A stretch of 46,274 bases of DNA from Perkinsus chesapeaki ATCC PRA-425 (Eukaryota > Protista > Perkinsozoa): the NCBI GenBank assembly GCA_013115145.1, contig JAAPAO010000256.1, forward strand, positions 1 to 46,274. The letters are read 5' to 3'. Made by a program: the position numbers and the translations under genes. The notes under the pieces were generated by a model. It searched no databases. It worked only from the letters and a program-made list of their open reading frames with translations, and was not told where the DNA came from. Of this stretch, positions 22,501 through 26,606 are shown in pieces; position 1 is the stretch's first letter, and every line of letters starts with the position of its first letter.

Positions 22501-23212
22501 GAAAAAGGTAGTGAAGGAGAAGGAGATCCATCTACTACAGTAACAGGTAAGTTAGTTATAATATGTAGGATGATTATATGGATATTATTACTGTATGACA
22601 GATAATAAAGGAAAGAAGGGACCACGAAAAGAGAGGAAAAGAGCAAGTATTATGGTGAAGGCAACAGATGTAGATAAAATAAATAAAGAAGAAGTCAATA
22701 CTATAGCGGAAAAAGTGAAGAAATCATCACCTAAAGATAGTCCTAAGAATAGTGATGGTGAAAAAGCATTACGAAAACATGGCAAAAGCCTTACAGGAAC
22801 TCTTAAAAGAGGAACATCGCTTATTGGAGCTTTATTATCACCAAGAATAATTAAAAGTGAAACAATACCTGAAGATCATCAACAACAACAGCAACAGCAG
22901 CAGGGTGCTAACGTAACTACATTTACATTTGGAAAAGAAGATATAAAAGAAGATAAAATAAAAGGGAATGATTTGAATGGAATCAAGGATAATAAAGAAG
23001 AACAAAAAAAGGAGAGAAGAAAAAAGAAAGATTTAAATGAGAAAGTAAAGAATAATAAAGAGAAAAATGAAGATAAGATGGAAAGAATAGAAGTAAAGAT
23101 AACACCACCAAACATGATAAATGATAATGAATCATCATCTGAATCACATACTAATAATAATCTAGGAATACCACGCTTTGGTGGTGTTAAATTCGGTAAA
23201 AGAGTTGGATGA
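16592..23212 (+). CDS. 6TM cation channel with C-linker, cNMP-binding domain and many ankyrin repeats (plant Shaker AKT/SKOR-like architecture)
   Basis: S1 LLVPFRIAF, S2 VDTIFSMDIVINFRT, S4 LLRFSRLRPILVRLE, S5 MAHLVACLWW, pore MMTTFGYFDISP, CNBD YYKGDAGDSTYWISSG...RRATA, ankyrins GKTALHIA, GTTPLYNAV, GMSPLMVA, GITPLMAA, LSALHW. Lys/Glu-rich tail. The 5' exons are less certain. Confidence 0.88.
20925..20998 (-). tRNA. tRNA-Val(CAC): tRNA-Val(CAC), antisense within an intron of the channel gene
   Basis: Cloverleaf GCTGGAA TG GTCTAGTTGGTTATGAC G ATCGC CTCACAC GCGAT AGGTT CCGAG TTCGATT CTCGG TTACAGT A. Anticodon and T stems are perfect, A and B boxes are present, discriminator is A. The acceptor stem has one mismatch. 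Confidence 0.9.
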
Positions 23213-23355
23213 TGATGATGATGAATATATTCCTTCGATGTTGTCCCCCTTATGTTGTTATATTATTAATAATTATTGTGTTATTAGTATTACTAAACAT
23301 GTAATACAACAGCAGTAATAATGTTTGTACAAAAATGACATATTAATAACAACCA

Positions 23356-24421
23356 TTAAATCTCTCTATTATCTTCATCACCTTCATTCTTCTTATTAAC
23401 ATTTGTTGATGGGAATGGATCATGTATATACTAGAAATAATAATAACATTATTATTATTGTTATTATTACCTTTCTAACTAACATATAAAGCGCAGAAGA
23501 CGCTAAAGCAATATTAACAAGAGCTAGATTAATATTAACTGGTGTAATAACAAATGACCATCTTGCCCATATAGCACCTAATTATAATATTATTATATAT
23601 GTTACTATCATTACTATTACTACCTGTAGCAAATAATGCTAATTGTTGTGGTACACTTACTGCATGAACAGGTCTTTTATAATCCATTAAATTGGCGGCA
23701 CTAAGACCCCATTTACAAGTTGGTGCCCAAAAGAATATAGTAAAAGGGCCAGCTGGATGTTGAAGGAATAATCTAACTTTAGATGGCATTGGTAATGCAC
23801 ATACCTTTTTTTGTAATCTTGGTACTATACCAAAACCTAATATAAATAATAATTATTTATAGTTGAATAATAATAATACCAGTTGCAACGGCAGCGCACA
23901 TCATAGCCCTTTTAGCTGATGTTTGTAATAATGCTCCATCATCATTTACAGTTAATCCCATATTATCCTTCAACCGTCCCTGTTCTTCTTGTTGTTGTTG
24001 TTGTTGAAGTTGTCTATCATACTTCATTCTTCTATATAATTGTGTTAATTGAACACCCTAAAGACACTACCATATTTATTAGTAATATTTATCATTACTT
24101 CATTAAATATATGACATGTAAATAATATATAATTTCTAGGTTGAACCATCCAGGCAAATCTCATAAACATAGCTGAATATATACATAAAGTACCAGTCAT
24201 TTGTAATGATATATATTCAGGTCCTTTAGTAGTTAAATCAGCAACACCAGCTAATGCTATTGTCCAATTAGCAACTGGCCCCCAAAAATGAGTAGTTTTC
24301 CATCCTATCTGATGATTAATAATAACATCACTCACATAGTTATTACATTAGGATCTAGGAAAGCATCTTTACCGGCTTTTAATAATAAACGAACTTTAGG
24401 TATAATAACCCCCGAACTCAT
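23356..24421 (-). CDS. Single-chain mitochondrial pyruvate carrier (MPC1-linker-MPC2 fusion), copy B
   Basis: Spliced: MSSG..LDPN|[36 protein letters not shown]|GVQL (MPC1) ..[10 protein letters not shown]|[37 protein letters not shown]|[21 protein letters not shown] (MPC2) ..DNREI*. Confidence 0.9.
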
Positions 24422-24937
24422 CAAGTAAGAAATAATACTACCTATATAATAATTATGACAACTAAACAATACTACTAGTGGAAAGGAACCAAGTATTAGC
24501 AGAAGAACAAGTAATACACCTATTGGAGTAGGAGCCAGCTTTAGCATCCAAATAATACCAATGTTGATATAACAGTAATAACATCAACAGTATTAATAAT
24601 GCTGCTAGTAATAAGTGTGGCGATGAATGTAATCGAGTGTGAAGCGTATAGAACATCTAAGTAGTAGAAGACGAAAGCAGCAAGAGGAGCAGCAAGAGGA
24701 GCTAGATAACAATCCTAGTTGTAATTGGATAATGTTAATGATGATGATGATGGCCAGGAATAGATCAGTATAAGACTATCTTGTCATAAATGACTTATAG
24801 AAATTTCCATTATTATGCCGCCAATCATCATGATCATCATCATTATACCAACATTATGATGCCATCTCCCCATTTAATAAGAGAGTGGCGGTCGGGTTGA
24901 TAGTAGTCTATTATCCAATAGTGCTCTTAACATCATC

Positions 24938-26226
24938 TTATGCAGTAGTAGCGGCGGTACTAGTAGCTGATGATGATGCCGCTGCTGCTGCTTGCTTGGT
25001 TGAAGCATTACGATCAACTGCTGCTGCTGCTGTTGATTGGGGAGCATTATCATGAACACTACTTGGGAATGGATCATACACCAACTAAGATGAATTATGA
25101 TACACTTATTATAATAGTGTTATTACCTTTCTCATTAAATGATAGAAAGCAGTGGATGCTAGACAGACATTGACAAGTGCCAAATTGTAGTTGACTGGAG
25201 TAATAACAAATGACCATCTCGCCCAGATTACACCTACAAACAAAAACAACAAGAGTAATAATACCATTATATTATAATATTACCAGTAGCAAATAGTGCA
25301 AGTTGTTGTGGTATACTAACCTTTTCAACAGGTCTCTTATAATCAACTAAGTTAGCAGCAGATATACCCCATTTAATAGCTGGTGCCCAAAAGAATATAG
25401 TAAATGGGCCAGCTGGATACATAAGGAATTTACGAAGTAATTCTGGCATAGGTAAAGCACATATCTTAGATTGAAGTTTAAGTACTGGATGGAAACCTAA
25501 TAATAAACCTAACATTAATATTATAATAATAGTATATTTACCTTTAATGGCAGCCTTAGCAGTATTAGCTGCAGGTGTTGCCTTAGCAGCAGCCTTTGCT
25601 ACATTCTCAGCAGTAGTAGTACTAGTTGTAGCCGCCGCAGCAGCAGCAGCCTCTGCTGCTTTAGATGATATATCACTAGTAGCTTTAGCAGCAGCGGCAC
25701 CAGCAGCAGTAGCAGCAAACATAGCCTTACTACCAGTAGATATACTACTAGACATACTCATATTATTGTTCTGTTGAACGGTGGTAGGCGGGGCTTGGGC
25801 TACTAATGCAGGAGACATACCAGCTATTTGCTGAGTACGTTGATCTTTTAGAGCTTTTTGATCACGTTGATATTTTAATGCACGTCCAAGTTGTATCAAT
25901 TGTACACCTTCATTGAATATATGACAATACAATAATAGATAATTCCTAGGTTGAACCATCCAGGCAAATCTCATAAATAATGCGGAGTATACACATAAAG
26001 TACCAGTCATTGGTATGGATATCATATCAGGACCTTGTGTGGTCATATCTAATACACCAGCAGCAACAATACCCCAGTTAGCCATAGGACCCCAAAAATT
26101 GGTAGTCTTCCAGCCCATCTAAAATATATGCCATAATAATATATAATAATAGTAACTACTTACTGTAGGGTCTAGAATGGCAGCTTTACCTTTAAGAAGG
26201 AGACGACGAACAGCAGTTGACGCCAT
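24938..26226 (-). CDS. Single-chain mitochondrial pyruvate carrier (MPC1-linker-MPC2 fusion), copy A
   Basis: ORF 25267-26118 holds MPC1 motifs (GWKTTNFWGPMANW, PRNYLLLYCHIFNE) and MPC2 motifs ([32 protein letters not shown]) in one stop-free frame. Later exons give [21 protein letters not shown] and a stop at 24938. Confidence 0.92.
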
Positions 26227-26606
26227 TTTTTGGAATAATCTTCTACTAATAATAAGATATAAATATTTTGACTAGCTTAAACTAACTCTATAATATTAAA
26301 AGGATACCACCATGTCAACACACAATAACACAATAGCTAGAGGTGTCAGAATACGTTGATAACCCAATCACACATCCTCAAGCGTATTGAAGTCTATTTT
26401 AAAAGGAGGTATGACCAAGAATACAACAAGACACAACAACGCAAACAATTTGTAGCGTTTGCAAAAGTGCGTGAATAATCACCACTTATTTTTGTTGTGA
26501 GTAAATTATTCCGAGAATGGATATTCTTGCACGATTATGTGCTTTACACGGGGAGCCAGTAGAGGAGTCTAGCGTATTTGGTTTGTTGGCGTTTTTGTCG
26601 TTAAAT

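Follow-up and report, generated by a model that had tools for sequence, protein, structure and literature searches.

On contig JAAPAO010000256.1 of Perkinsus chesapeaki ATCC PRA-425 (assembly GCA_013115145.1), two neighbouring genes raised the question of whether a mitochondrial pyruvate carrier (MPC) can be encoded naturally as a single chain with both an MPC1-type and an MPC2-type domain, and whether such a fusion is a novelty of Perkinsus. The window analysed was a stretch of 46,274 nucleotides, positions 1 to 46,274 of this contig. The two genes, referred to as copies A and B, are arranged in tandem on the minus strand of 23356-26226, and each of them reads in one frame from an MPC1-type domain through a linker into an MPC2-type domain. 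An earlier note on this DNA had read both copies as MPC1 then MPC2 in a single frame, which was borne out by gene models, PF03650 matches and RNA joints; its end coordinates were exact, 23356 being the stop of B and 26226 the ATG of A. The gene models derived from the sequence are given below.

24938 to 26226, minus strand: copy A gene, 5 exons, CDS 1107 nt, 368 aa; MPC1-type half, long Ala/Thr-rich linker, MPC2-type half and Ala/Ser/Thr-rich C-terminal tail
26226-26164, 26118-25542, 25496-25284, 25233-25127 and 25084-24938, minus strand: exons of copy A
23356 to 24421, minus strand: copy B gene, 6 exons, CDS 858 nt, 285 aa; architecture as in copy A, with a short linker
24421-24347, 24308-24099, 24057-23880, 23836-23624, 23577-23471 and 23430-23356, minus strand: exons of copy B

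All nine introns of the two genes had GT..AG ends, a length of 38-50 nt and a GC content of 9-26%, and intron positions were conserved between A and B. Among the 7283 stop-free runs in the six frames of the window (median 5 codons), only two reached at least 283 codons, one being the ORF at 25285-26118 of copy A (283 codons). The claim that both domains of copy A lie in this one ORF held for the whole MPC1 domain and the linker, but the MPC2 domain is included only as far as LFATG, its first half, TM6-TM7 being encoded in the next exon past a 50-nt intron. The public P. chesapeaki models of both copies were wrong: 67 residues of the MPC1 domain are deleted from that of copy A, and that of copy B (P0057) starts at an internal Met (MKYDRQ...) and is without the MPC1 half. 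Since RNA ties the MPC1 exon of B to the linker, P0057 was considered a truncated automatic model.

Every coding piece of A and B matched PF03650 at 32.5-155 bits (curated cut-off 27 bits), placing both proteins in the MPC family (TC 2.A.105), and ORF 25285-26118 gave two matched stretches (E 6.7e-46). No match to the SWEET/MtN3 profile (PF03083) was found in the Pfam scan of A and B, which returned PF03650 only. The best human match was MPC1 for the N-half (E 3.5e-24) and MPC2 for the C-half (E 9e-24), indicating one protomer of each type, and each half was approximately 40-55% identical to its human counterpart. Domains and key residues, with human equivalence by alignment, were located as follows.

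25825 to 26115, minus strand: copy A MPC1-type domain, TM1-TM3; PF03650 stretch, residues 2-98 of ORF 25285-26118
26082-26074 (ANW), 25995-25984 (CVYS) and 25926-25915 (CHIF), minus strand: copy A MPC1-type residues Asn35, Tyr65 and His87
25127 to 25496, minus strand: copy A MPC2-type half; amphipathic helix FHPVLKLQSK, then TM5-TM7, broken by intron 25283-25234; PF03650
25377-25366 (IKWG), 25231-25214 (VIWARW) and 25177-25166 (LVNV), minus strand: copy A MPC2-type residues Lys255, Trp288 and Asn306
24099 to 24308, minus strand: copy B MPC1-type domain exon, ending ...CHIFNE, with GVQL opening the next exon; PF03650 E 1.4e-25
23471 to 23836, minus strand: copy B MPC2-type half, exons 4-5 with intron 23623-23578; Lys196, Trp229 and Asn247; PF03650 E 1.7e-15 and 1e-07

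The six polar residues of the rotation centre (MPC1 N33, Y62 and H84; MPC2 K49, W82 and N100) were present in A and B and invariant in 41 fused homologues; their functional roles have been described (PMC12280002). As had been proposed from the sequence, the substrate site is kept, with ANW, CHIFNE, KWG and LVN aligning to human Asn33, His84, Lys49 and Asn100.

RNA support was taken from joints in Logan RNA-derived contigs (runs X1 and X2). Six of the nine introns were seen as joints. In copy A these were introns 26163-26119, 25541-25497, 25283-25234 (joint 25231>25282) and 25126-25085, the second being the linker intron, for which a spliced joint 25494>25540 (cut +2) was found in X2 and agreeing loose ends in X1. 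The linker of A was transcribed, with contigs over 25571-25770 and 25540-25669 and depth unbroken across it. Joints backed introns 24346-24309 and 24098-24058 of copy B, and the proposal that its introns restore NE/GVQL agreed with the sequence and with joints 24056>24098 in two runs. A contig of X2 running from 24165 over the joint to 23946 placed the MPC1 domain and linker of B on one RNA, and no sense-orientation RNA was found over the linker intron or MPC2 exons of this copy. No Logan contig spanned a complete gene A or B, because these contigs are short. Joint 24810>25127 was rejected as an alternative splice, as it skipped 316 nt, had non-canonical ends and occurred in one contig with 25 nt on the short side. 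Both copies are expressed, and in copy A the fusion is spliced across the linker.

The linker features were as follows.

25542 to 25824, minus strand: copy A linker, stop-free and GC-richer (48%); hydrophobic segment AMFAATAAGAAAA at 25725-25687, then an Ala/Lys/Thr low-complexity stretch
25497 to 25541, minus strand: copy A linker intron, 45 nt, phase 1, in frame and stop-free
23820 to 23907, minus strand: copy B candidate TM4 (ending /FGIVP), divided by linker intron 23879-23837; Kyte-Doolittle 19-residue mean 1.03, similar to true MPC helices

Since the linker intron of A is in frame and stop-free, the fusion holds whether this intron is spliced or not. The same position and phase had been noted for the linker intron of both copies, correctly, as 25541-25497 in A and 23879-23837 in B are both phase 1 (G/GF). 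The linker sequence was poorly conserved between A and B. In most fused homologues it was approximately 40-50 residues long with a hydrophobic Gly/Ala-rich segment in place; in dinoflagellate-type homologues it fell under the hydropathy threshold. The B-type segment formed helices 112-120 and 122-135 in the AlphaFold model of P. olseni P0007, with only moderate pLDDT (56-73). The hydrophobic segment of A is just 13 residues long with lysines on either side. In the model of the P. marinus A-type orthologue the linker was mostly disordered (pLDDT <50 at residues 133-172), followed by a helix at 173-200; this helix, at the place of TM4, was Ala/Lys-rich and not very hydrophobic, and the hydrophobic segment itself was left disordered. 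The models suggest that the linker segment may cross the membrane as TM4, although the case for copy A is weak.

Copy A shared 95% identity, in its N-half and its C-half alike, with the partial P. marinus proteins P0002 and P0003, and copy B was 89% (N-half) and 88% (C-half) identical to P0007. The P. olseni locus, found via P0001, has the same A-B tandem and the same neighbours on either side; A and B are paralogues older than the split of P. chesapeaki and P. olseni. A chance ORF or mis-joined neighbouring genes were ruled out by the ORF statistics, by the RNA joints and by the fact that the fusion is conserved across three Perkinsus species and recurs in many transcriptomes. Altogether 57 homologues of fused length were obtained, approximately 45 of them with an MPC1 motif and, about 130 residues on, an MPC2 motif; the order was always MPC1 to MPC2. 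They included complete ORFs of assembled transcripts (MMETSP, EukProt) and came from perkinsids, dinoflagellates, diatoms, brown algae, labyrinthulids and chlorarachniophytes. In an exhaustive search, approximately 30 fused cluster representatives were among the best 150 matches of 1688 MPC-family representatives. Fused proteins named to taxon were from SAR lineages without exception, and separate MPC1 and MPC2 genes were found in animals, fungi, plants, red algae, Naegleria and cryptophytes. Among the best 120 of 384 single-domain matches to the 70-aa exon that encodes the MPC1 domain of B, no stand-alone MPC1 named Perkinsus was found. P0058, P0059 and P0101, candidates for stand-alone MPC1s in the fused clade, were rejected as truncated models, two of them reading into an intron.

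The fused N-halves formed one clade (SH-aLRT 98-99). When the tree was rooted with MPC2, they lay inside the stand-alone MPC1s, with Naegleria and others branching earlier, and the fused C-halves lay inside the stand-alone MPC2s, the backbone support being weak in both cases (61-86). When both types were put in one tree, a branch with support 100 set the MPC2-type sequences (43 C-halves and 35 singles) apart from the rest. The C-half tree, used for MPC2 membership only, had as its biggest well-supported clade 27 of the 43 C-halves with 2 stand-alone MPC2 rows (SH-aLRT 96), the others being unplaced. This tree evidence suggests that the fusion is an old, derived event common to many SAR lineages, with a single origin from separate MPC1 and MPC2, and no Perkinsus novelty. 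A fuller scenario is offered tentatively, as one that may well prove wrong: the fused MPC arose once and is scattered over SAR (perkinsids, dinoflagellates, diatoms, brown algae, pelagophytes, labyrinthulids and chlorarachniophytes), while the sister lineages Platyproteum (apicomplexan-type), oomycetes, Nannochloropsis and a cercozoan keep an unrelated stand-alone MPC1, so that either fused and split carriers would have had to exist side by side for a long time, with losses differing between lineages, or a core mitochondrial transporter would have been passed on by lateral or endosymbiotic transfer. In the same scenario, the Perkinsus duplication would have led to two specialised isoforms, a compact B and an A whose linker and tail are long and disordered; if true, these would be analogous to yeast MPC2/MPC3.

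The protein C5K6B0 is probably a UniProt entry of P. marinus. It represents the 7-TMS MPC proteins of TC 2.A.105.1.8, with 3+1+3 topology and MPC1-like and MPC2-like halves (Medrano-Soto et al. 2020, PMC7176098), and a "single fused MPC" of P. marinus, as well as fused MPCs of Aureococcus and Symbiodinium, has also been reported (bioRxiv 10.1101/2025.01.06.631440). Copies A and B are of this type in having both halves, MPC1-like first, in one polypeptide, and they share its architecture of MPC1-like N-half and MPC2-like C-half, with a putative central TMS in between. These works are, however, at catalogue level and do not include the gene structure, tandem paralogues, RNA support and phylogeny given here. 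In diatoms, Cyclotella cryptica g13004.t1 was described as one gene with MPC1 and MPC2 parts, perhaps in a different (export) role, as its authors suggested because lower glycolysis is mitochondrial in stramenopiles (Traller et al. 2016, PMC5124317). P0191, the Cyclotella protein of 300 aa, matched the query through both halves in one stretch, a single gene as in Perkinsus but only 37% identical. The earlier belief that the fusion was undescribed was thus mistaken, since it had been in print in 2016 (diatoms), 2020 (TCDB) and 2025 (P. marinus); proteins with two PF03650 domains are widespread and already noted, though none is experimentally characterised. The single-chain MPC was already known, and the P. 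chesapeaki proteins are a confirmation and not a discovery. The corrected P. chesapeaki gene models, the conserved tandem paralogues, the RNA support for a spliced fusion and the evidence for a single origin are new in this work.

Copies A and B are probably tandemly duplicated, expressed nuclear genes, each encoding a single-chain mitochondrial pyruvate carrier of 3+1+3 architecture. Human MPC1 and MPC2 are oriented alike, with the N-terminus in the matrix and the C-terminus in the intermembrane space, so the two bundles of a fused chain can stay parallel only if it crosses the membrane once more, and with this added crossing the layout becomes 3+1+3, as in SWEETs, PQ-loop transporters and KDEL receptors. 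An MPC1-type three-helix bundle (TM1-3) would be joined to an MPC2-type three-helix bundle (TM5-7) by a linker whose weakly hydrophobic Gly/Ala-rich helix would return the chain across the inner membrane and which would also bear the MPC2-type N-terminal amphipathic helix. The fused protein is presumed to be mitochondrial, uncleaved when mature and a transporter of pyruvate. Import would proceed by the rocking mechanism of the heterodimer, with the conserved Lys/Asn of the MPC2-type half and Asn/Tyr/His of the MPC1-type half as the transport centre, and the 1:1 stoichiometry would be set genetically.

Two other readings concern the product. The chain could be a polyprotein precursor whose linker is cut during or after import, so that the mature carrier is an ordinary MPC1/MPC2 heterodimer and the fusion serves co-expression and co-import only. 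Polyprotein precursors are used for some organellar proteins in dinoflagellates and their relatives, and the linker of A and its P. marinus orthologue, being long, low-complexity, Ala/Thr-rich and predicted to be disordered, looks protease-accessible; its poor conservation between A and B points the same way. We nevertheless regard this as unlikely, because the hydrophobic segment retained in most fused lineages would be needless if the halves parted, most homologues have short linkers, the models are compact 7-helix bundles and no conserved cleavage motif was seen. Very improbable too is a dual output, in which internal spliced-leader trans-splicing or an internal start gives an MPC2-only product besides the fused mRNA and separate subunits are still made. 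Spliced-leader trans-splicing occurs in perkinsids, each copy has in-frame Met codons ahead of its MPC2 half, and the public annotation of B opens at an internal Met. However, that annotation is the truncated P0057 model, an mRNA containing the MPC1 half reads through as no stop codon follows this half, and no spliced-leader sequence was found joined at the linker acceptor, where every loose end belongs either to the regular splice of exon 2 to exon 3 or to a divergent allele.

A third reading differs on origin and not on function: the 3+1+3 protein would be ancestral, formed from a duplicated 4-TMS precursor, with stand-alone MPC1 and MPC2 arising by fission. Medrano-Soto et al. (2020, PMC7176098) favoured such an origin, and the unrooted MPC1 tree has one long, well-supported branch between fused and stand-alone forms on which the root could sit. 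Rooting with the MPC2 paralogue instead nested both fused halves among stand-alone proteins, weak as that backbone was, and the restriction of named fused proteins to SAR, with separate genes in the other groups listed above, also argues against fission, which appears quite unlikely.

With the single-chain carrier as the preferred reading, subunit stoichiometry and orientation would be fixed by nature, which would make the protein convenient for studying the structure and transport of a carrier that is a drug target. Perkinsus is a shellfish parasite, and its mitochondrial pyruvate entry probably rests on genes A and B alone. The fused MPC can also be seen as an independent replay of the SemiSWEET-to-SWEET transition, an idea already in print (2016, 2020, 2025).

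For comparison with known systems, structures predicted for the Perkinsus orthologues P0007 and P0002 were used in place of the spliced P. chesapeaki proteins. The P0007 AlphaFold model (pLDDT 85.8, pTM 0.78) matched as a whole AtSWEET13 (Z 13.2, 202 residues), OsSWEET2b, cystinosin and KDELR, and the A-type model (P0002) gave the same picture; whole-model matches had Z 10-13 over 160-206 residues, of which Z 12-13 is a level that, as the tool warns, helical bundles generally can give. These fold matches support the parallel with SemiSWEET and SWEET that the earlier note had drawn. SWEETs (AtSWEET13 5xpd, OsSWEET2b 5ctg), the PQ-loop protein cystinosin and the KDEL receptor are like the fused MPC in the predicted 3+1+3 seven-helix architecture, whereas identity is only 5-16% (11-16% for the SWEET structures), the MPC halves are two old paralogues and not a recent internal duplication, and substrate and membrane differ from those of SWEET. 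By these models the fused MPC resembles SWEET in architecture only, and by profile and sequence identity it is no member of the SWEET family.

The overlay on human MPC that had been suggested showed that the halves of the orthologue models superpose, with TM-scores of 0.85-0.90 on MPC1 chains (rmsd 1.1-1.6 A, the three-helix-bundle protomer fold) and 0.73-0.75 on MPC2 chains; for P0007 the values were 0.90 and 0.75. The human/yeast MPC1-MPC2 heterodimer (PDB 8yw6-8yw9, 9giv-9giy, 9mnw-9mo0, 9o9s/t) shares with the Perkinsus protein superposable halves and the rotation-centre residues Asn33/Tyr62/His84 and Lys49/Trp82/Asn100. In contrast, it consists of two separate 3-TM polypeptides, whereas the Perkinsus carrier is a single polypeptide that also contains a linker and a putative seventh helix, and the alveolate fused forms, unlike human/yeast MPC, extend at the C-terminus into an additional tail in which a DPFP motif is conserved.

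On the minus strand of positions 23356-26226, an AT-rich region with a GC content of about 31-36%, two tandem genes interrupted by very short GT-AG introns were identified, each encoding an MPC1-type half, a linker and an MPC2-type half. Both gene models were built by hand and then verified by translation, which agreed with the coordinates of the earlier note.

Copy A: exons 26226-26164, 26118-25542, 25496-25284, 25233-25127 and 25084-24938, minus strand, fused MPC of 368 aa
Copy B: exons 24421-24347, 24308-24099, 24057-23880, 23836-23624, 23577-23471 and 23430-23356, minus strand, fused MPC of 285 aa

The introns of the two copies (n = 9) were 38-50 nt long with a GC content of 9-26%. Four introns were common to A and B in both position and phase, and copy B had an additional intron between NE and GV, at exactly the point where A is uninterrupted; this intron, described in the earlier note, was borne out by the sequence and by the RNA joint 24056>24098. 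The linker intron was in phase 1 in both copies, directly before GF(H/G)(P/I)V. Since that of copy A (45 nt) contains no stop codon, the fusion in A stands whether it is spliced or not. The sequence statements of the earlier note were all correct, with the restriction that the single ORF of A (25267-26118), beyond the MPC1 domain and linker, reaches no further than halfway through the MPC2 domain. Among the 7283 stop-free runs in all six frames of the window, only this ORF and one other are 283 codons or longer.

Four RNA-type runs were mapped to 23300-26300. Contig joints matched all four introns of copy A (26118>26164, 25494>25540, 25231>25282 and 25084>25127) and the first two of copy B (24305>24347 and the joint between NE and GV). 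RNA depth was unbroken through the linker of A, with a 200-nt contig lying entirely inside it (25571-25770). The contigs were short and none of the four runs yielded one spanning a whole gene, nor was sense-strand RNA for the linker intron and MPC2 exons of B found in them. The source of several contigs was an allele or strain that diverges from the window. Loose ends at 25473-25541, 25127 and 24403 revealed a second, clearly different version of both genes, with letters replaced at the linker junction of A, a different start of exon 5 and a different N-terminus of B, suggesting that a second haplotype, or else a close relative of this strain, was present in the cultures. In run X4, a 454 metatranscriptome, a 508-nt contig matched 23314-23802 with zero mismatches and retained the introns of copy B; it carried 19 extra letters, CCGTAGCCATTTTGGCTCA, at its plus-strand 5' side, which we take to resemble a dinoflagellate/perkinsid spliced leader. 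On that reading an SL-capped transcript would begin just past the AG at 23314-23315 and run antisense to copy B over its 3' exons; a library artefact could also explain the contig.

The public P. chesapeaki models of both copies were wrong. In P0005 (copy A, 301 aa), a false internal intron at roughly 25800-26003 drops 67 residues of the MPC1 domain, and RNA contigs 25867-26091 and 25956-26064 cross its supposed donor without a break. P0057 (copy B, 180 aa) takes an internal Met as its start, and the first exons with the MPC1 half (24058-24421) are missing from it, contrary to one RNA contig that links the MPC1 exon of B, over the intron between NE and GV, to the linker. The P. olseni models (locus L001, 6001-8969) were uneven, as P0001 stops early after LFATG and P0004 lacks a portion of the linker. 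In Perkinsus, this gene family is in general not reliably annotated by automatic methods.

All coding pieces of A and B were matched by PF03650, and the ORF of A was matched twice. When the B orthologue of P. olseni was compared with PDB sequences, its N-half matched human MPC1 (E 3.5e-24) and its C-half human MPC2 (E 9e-24). In an alignment of P. olseni with human sequences, both copies kept the equivalents of MPC1 Asn33, Tyr62 and His84 and of MPC2 Lys49, Trp82 and Asn100, including the four substrate-site residues named previously (Asn33/His84, Lys49/Asn100), and all six were invariant among 41 aligned fused proteins. These residues form the "rotation centre" in 2025 cryo-EM work, where Lys49 and Asn100 were essential for transport (PMC12280002). 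Gene models, PF03650 matches and RNA joints together confirmed fused MPC1-MPC2 genes in two tandem copies. A (V/I)(Y/H)DPFP motif directly follows the last helix in both copies (25064-25081 and 23410-23427) and in many fused homologues, including the two from named alveolates, Amoebophrya (P0035) and P. olseni (P0007); human MPC2 is without it.

Orthologues of A and B occur in the same order and orientation in P. olseni JABANP010000004.1, so the duplication predates the split of P. chesapeaki and P. olseni. There the pair has a CCCH zinc-finger gene on one side and an ion-channel/ankyrin gene on the other. A plus-strand ORF in the window (22595-23212) is a candidate for a channel-type gene at the position equivalent to the latter. 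Its stop (23212) lies 143 bp from that of copy B on the opposite strand, so the 3' UTRs must overlap or be very short.

A search limited to fused-length proteins gave 57 matches; in about 45 of them an MPC1 motif was followed about 130 residues on by an MPC2 motif, and the order was never reversed. Named sources were P. olseni, P. marinus, Amoebophrya, Amorphochlora, Hondaea and Ectocarpus, to which a cluster look-up added a dinoflagellate and the diatom Cyclotella cryptica. Several matches were complete ORFs of assembled transcripts (MMETSP, EukProt), and the fusion in relatives is thus supported at the transcript level. Exhaustive HMMER searching of 1.84 billion representatives found 1688 clusters of the MPC family, and roughly 30 of the best 150 of these matches covered both halves. 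Such proteins are widespread, and they are also in print: the earlier note knew of no description, but fused MPCs were reported in diatoms by Traller et al. (PMC5124317), Medrano-Soto et al. (PMC7176098) gave C5K6B0 (TC 2.A.105.1.8) as an example with MPC1-like TMS 1-3 and MPC2-like TMS 5-7, and a 2025 preprint on the Plasmodium berghei MPC named Perkinsus marinus, Aureococcus and Symbiodinium as organisms whose only MPC is a single fused one (bioRxiv 2025.01.06.631440). Neither the type of protein nor its presence in the genus Perkinsus is new; no experimental characterisation of a fused MPC was found in the literature searched. Worth recording are the corrections to the gene models, the conservation of the tandem paralogues and the single-clade result and, as questions, the candidate linker helix TM4 in copy A and possible cleavage of the linker.

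In the MPC1-domain tree, all 43 fused N-halves fell on one side of a branch (SH-aLRT 98), joined only by three short proteins that are truncated fused models, two of them reading into an intron. Stand-alone MPC1s, including those of Platyproteum (apicomplexan-type), oomycetes, Nannochloropsis and a cercozoan, lay on the other side. Fused C-halves grouped with MPC2 in a joint MPC1+MPC2 tree (support 100), and a paralogue-rooted tree with weak backbone support nested both halves within their own subfamilies. An ancestral 7-TMS origin of the fused MPC was preferred in PMC7176098; the nested tree positions argue against it, as does the restriction of all fused proteins with a taxon name to SAR lineages. 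Together with the single clade of N-halves, these sequence comparisons favour the view that MPC1 and MPC2 fused once, as a derived event. The patchy spread within SAR may reflect differential loss or transfer.

Human MPC1 and MPC2 both have the N-terminus in the matrix and the C-terminus in the intermembrane space (PMC12280002), so in a head-to-tail fusion the two bundles can stay parallel only when the linker passes back through the membrane. In the alignment, the linker of most fused proteins contained a Gly/Ala-rich hydrophobic stretch, followed by an amphipathic (I/V)VP(K/R)(I/L)Q helix and the MPC2-type LPMP...HPAGP entry. Its hydropathy was 0.9-1.5 in Perkinsus, Amorphochlora, Hondaea and Ectocarpus, comparable to true MPC helices, and sub-threshold in dinoflagellate-type sequences. 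The AlphaFold2 model of the B-type orthologue P0007 had a pLDDT of 85.8 and a pTM of 0.78, with linker helices at 112-135 (pLDDT 56-73). The comparison with human MPC proposed earlier was made on this model by Foldseek, and its halves matched human MPC2 (TM 0.75) and MPC1 (TM 0.90). In the model of P0002, the P. marinus A-type orthologue (pLDDT 80.1), linker residues 110-172 were disordered and followed by a helix at 173-200, and the model matched 7-TM folds end to end despite this disorder. A topology of three helices, one linker helix and three helices is thus reasonably supported by modelling for copy B, whereas the identity of the segment predicted to cross the membrane in copy A is uncertain. 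The single-chain pseudo-dimer of the earlier note, paralleling the step from SemiSWEET to SWEET, is the best-supported mechanism. VIA-align ranked 7-TM proteins at the top for the P0007 model (5xpd, Z 13.2, 202 residues, model residues 3-248), and the whole model matched AtSWEET13, OsSWEET2b, KDELR and cystinosin in Foldseek.
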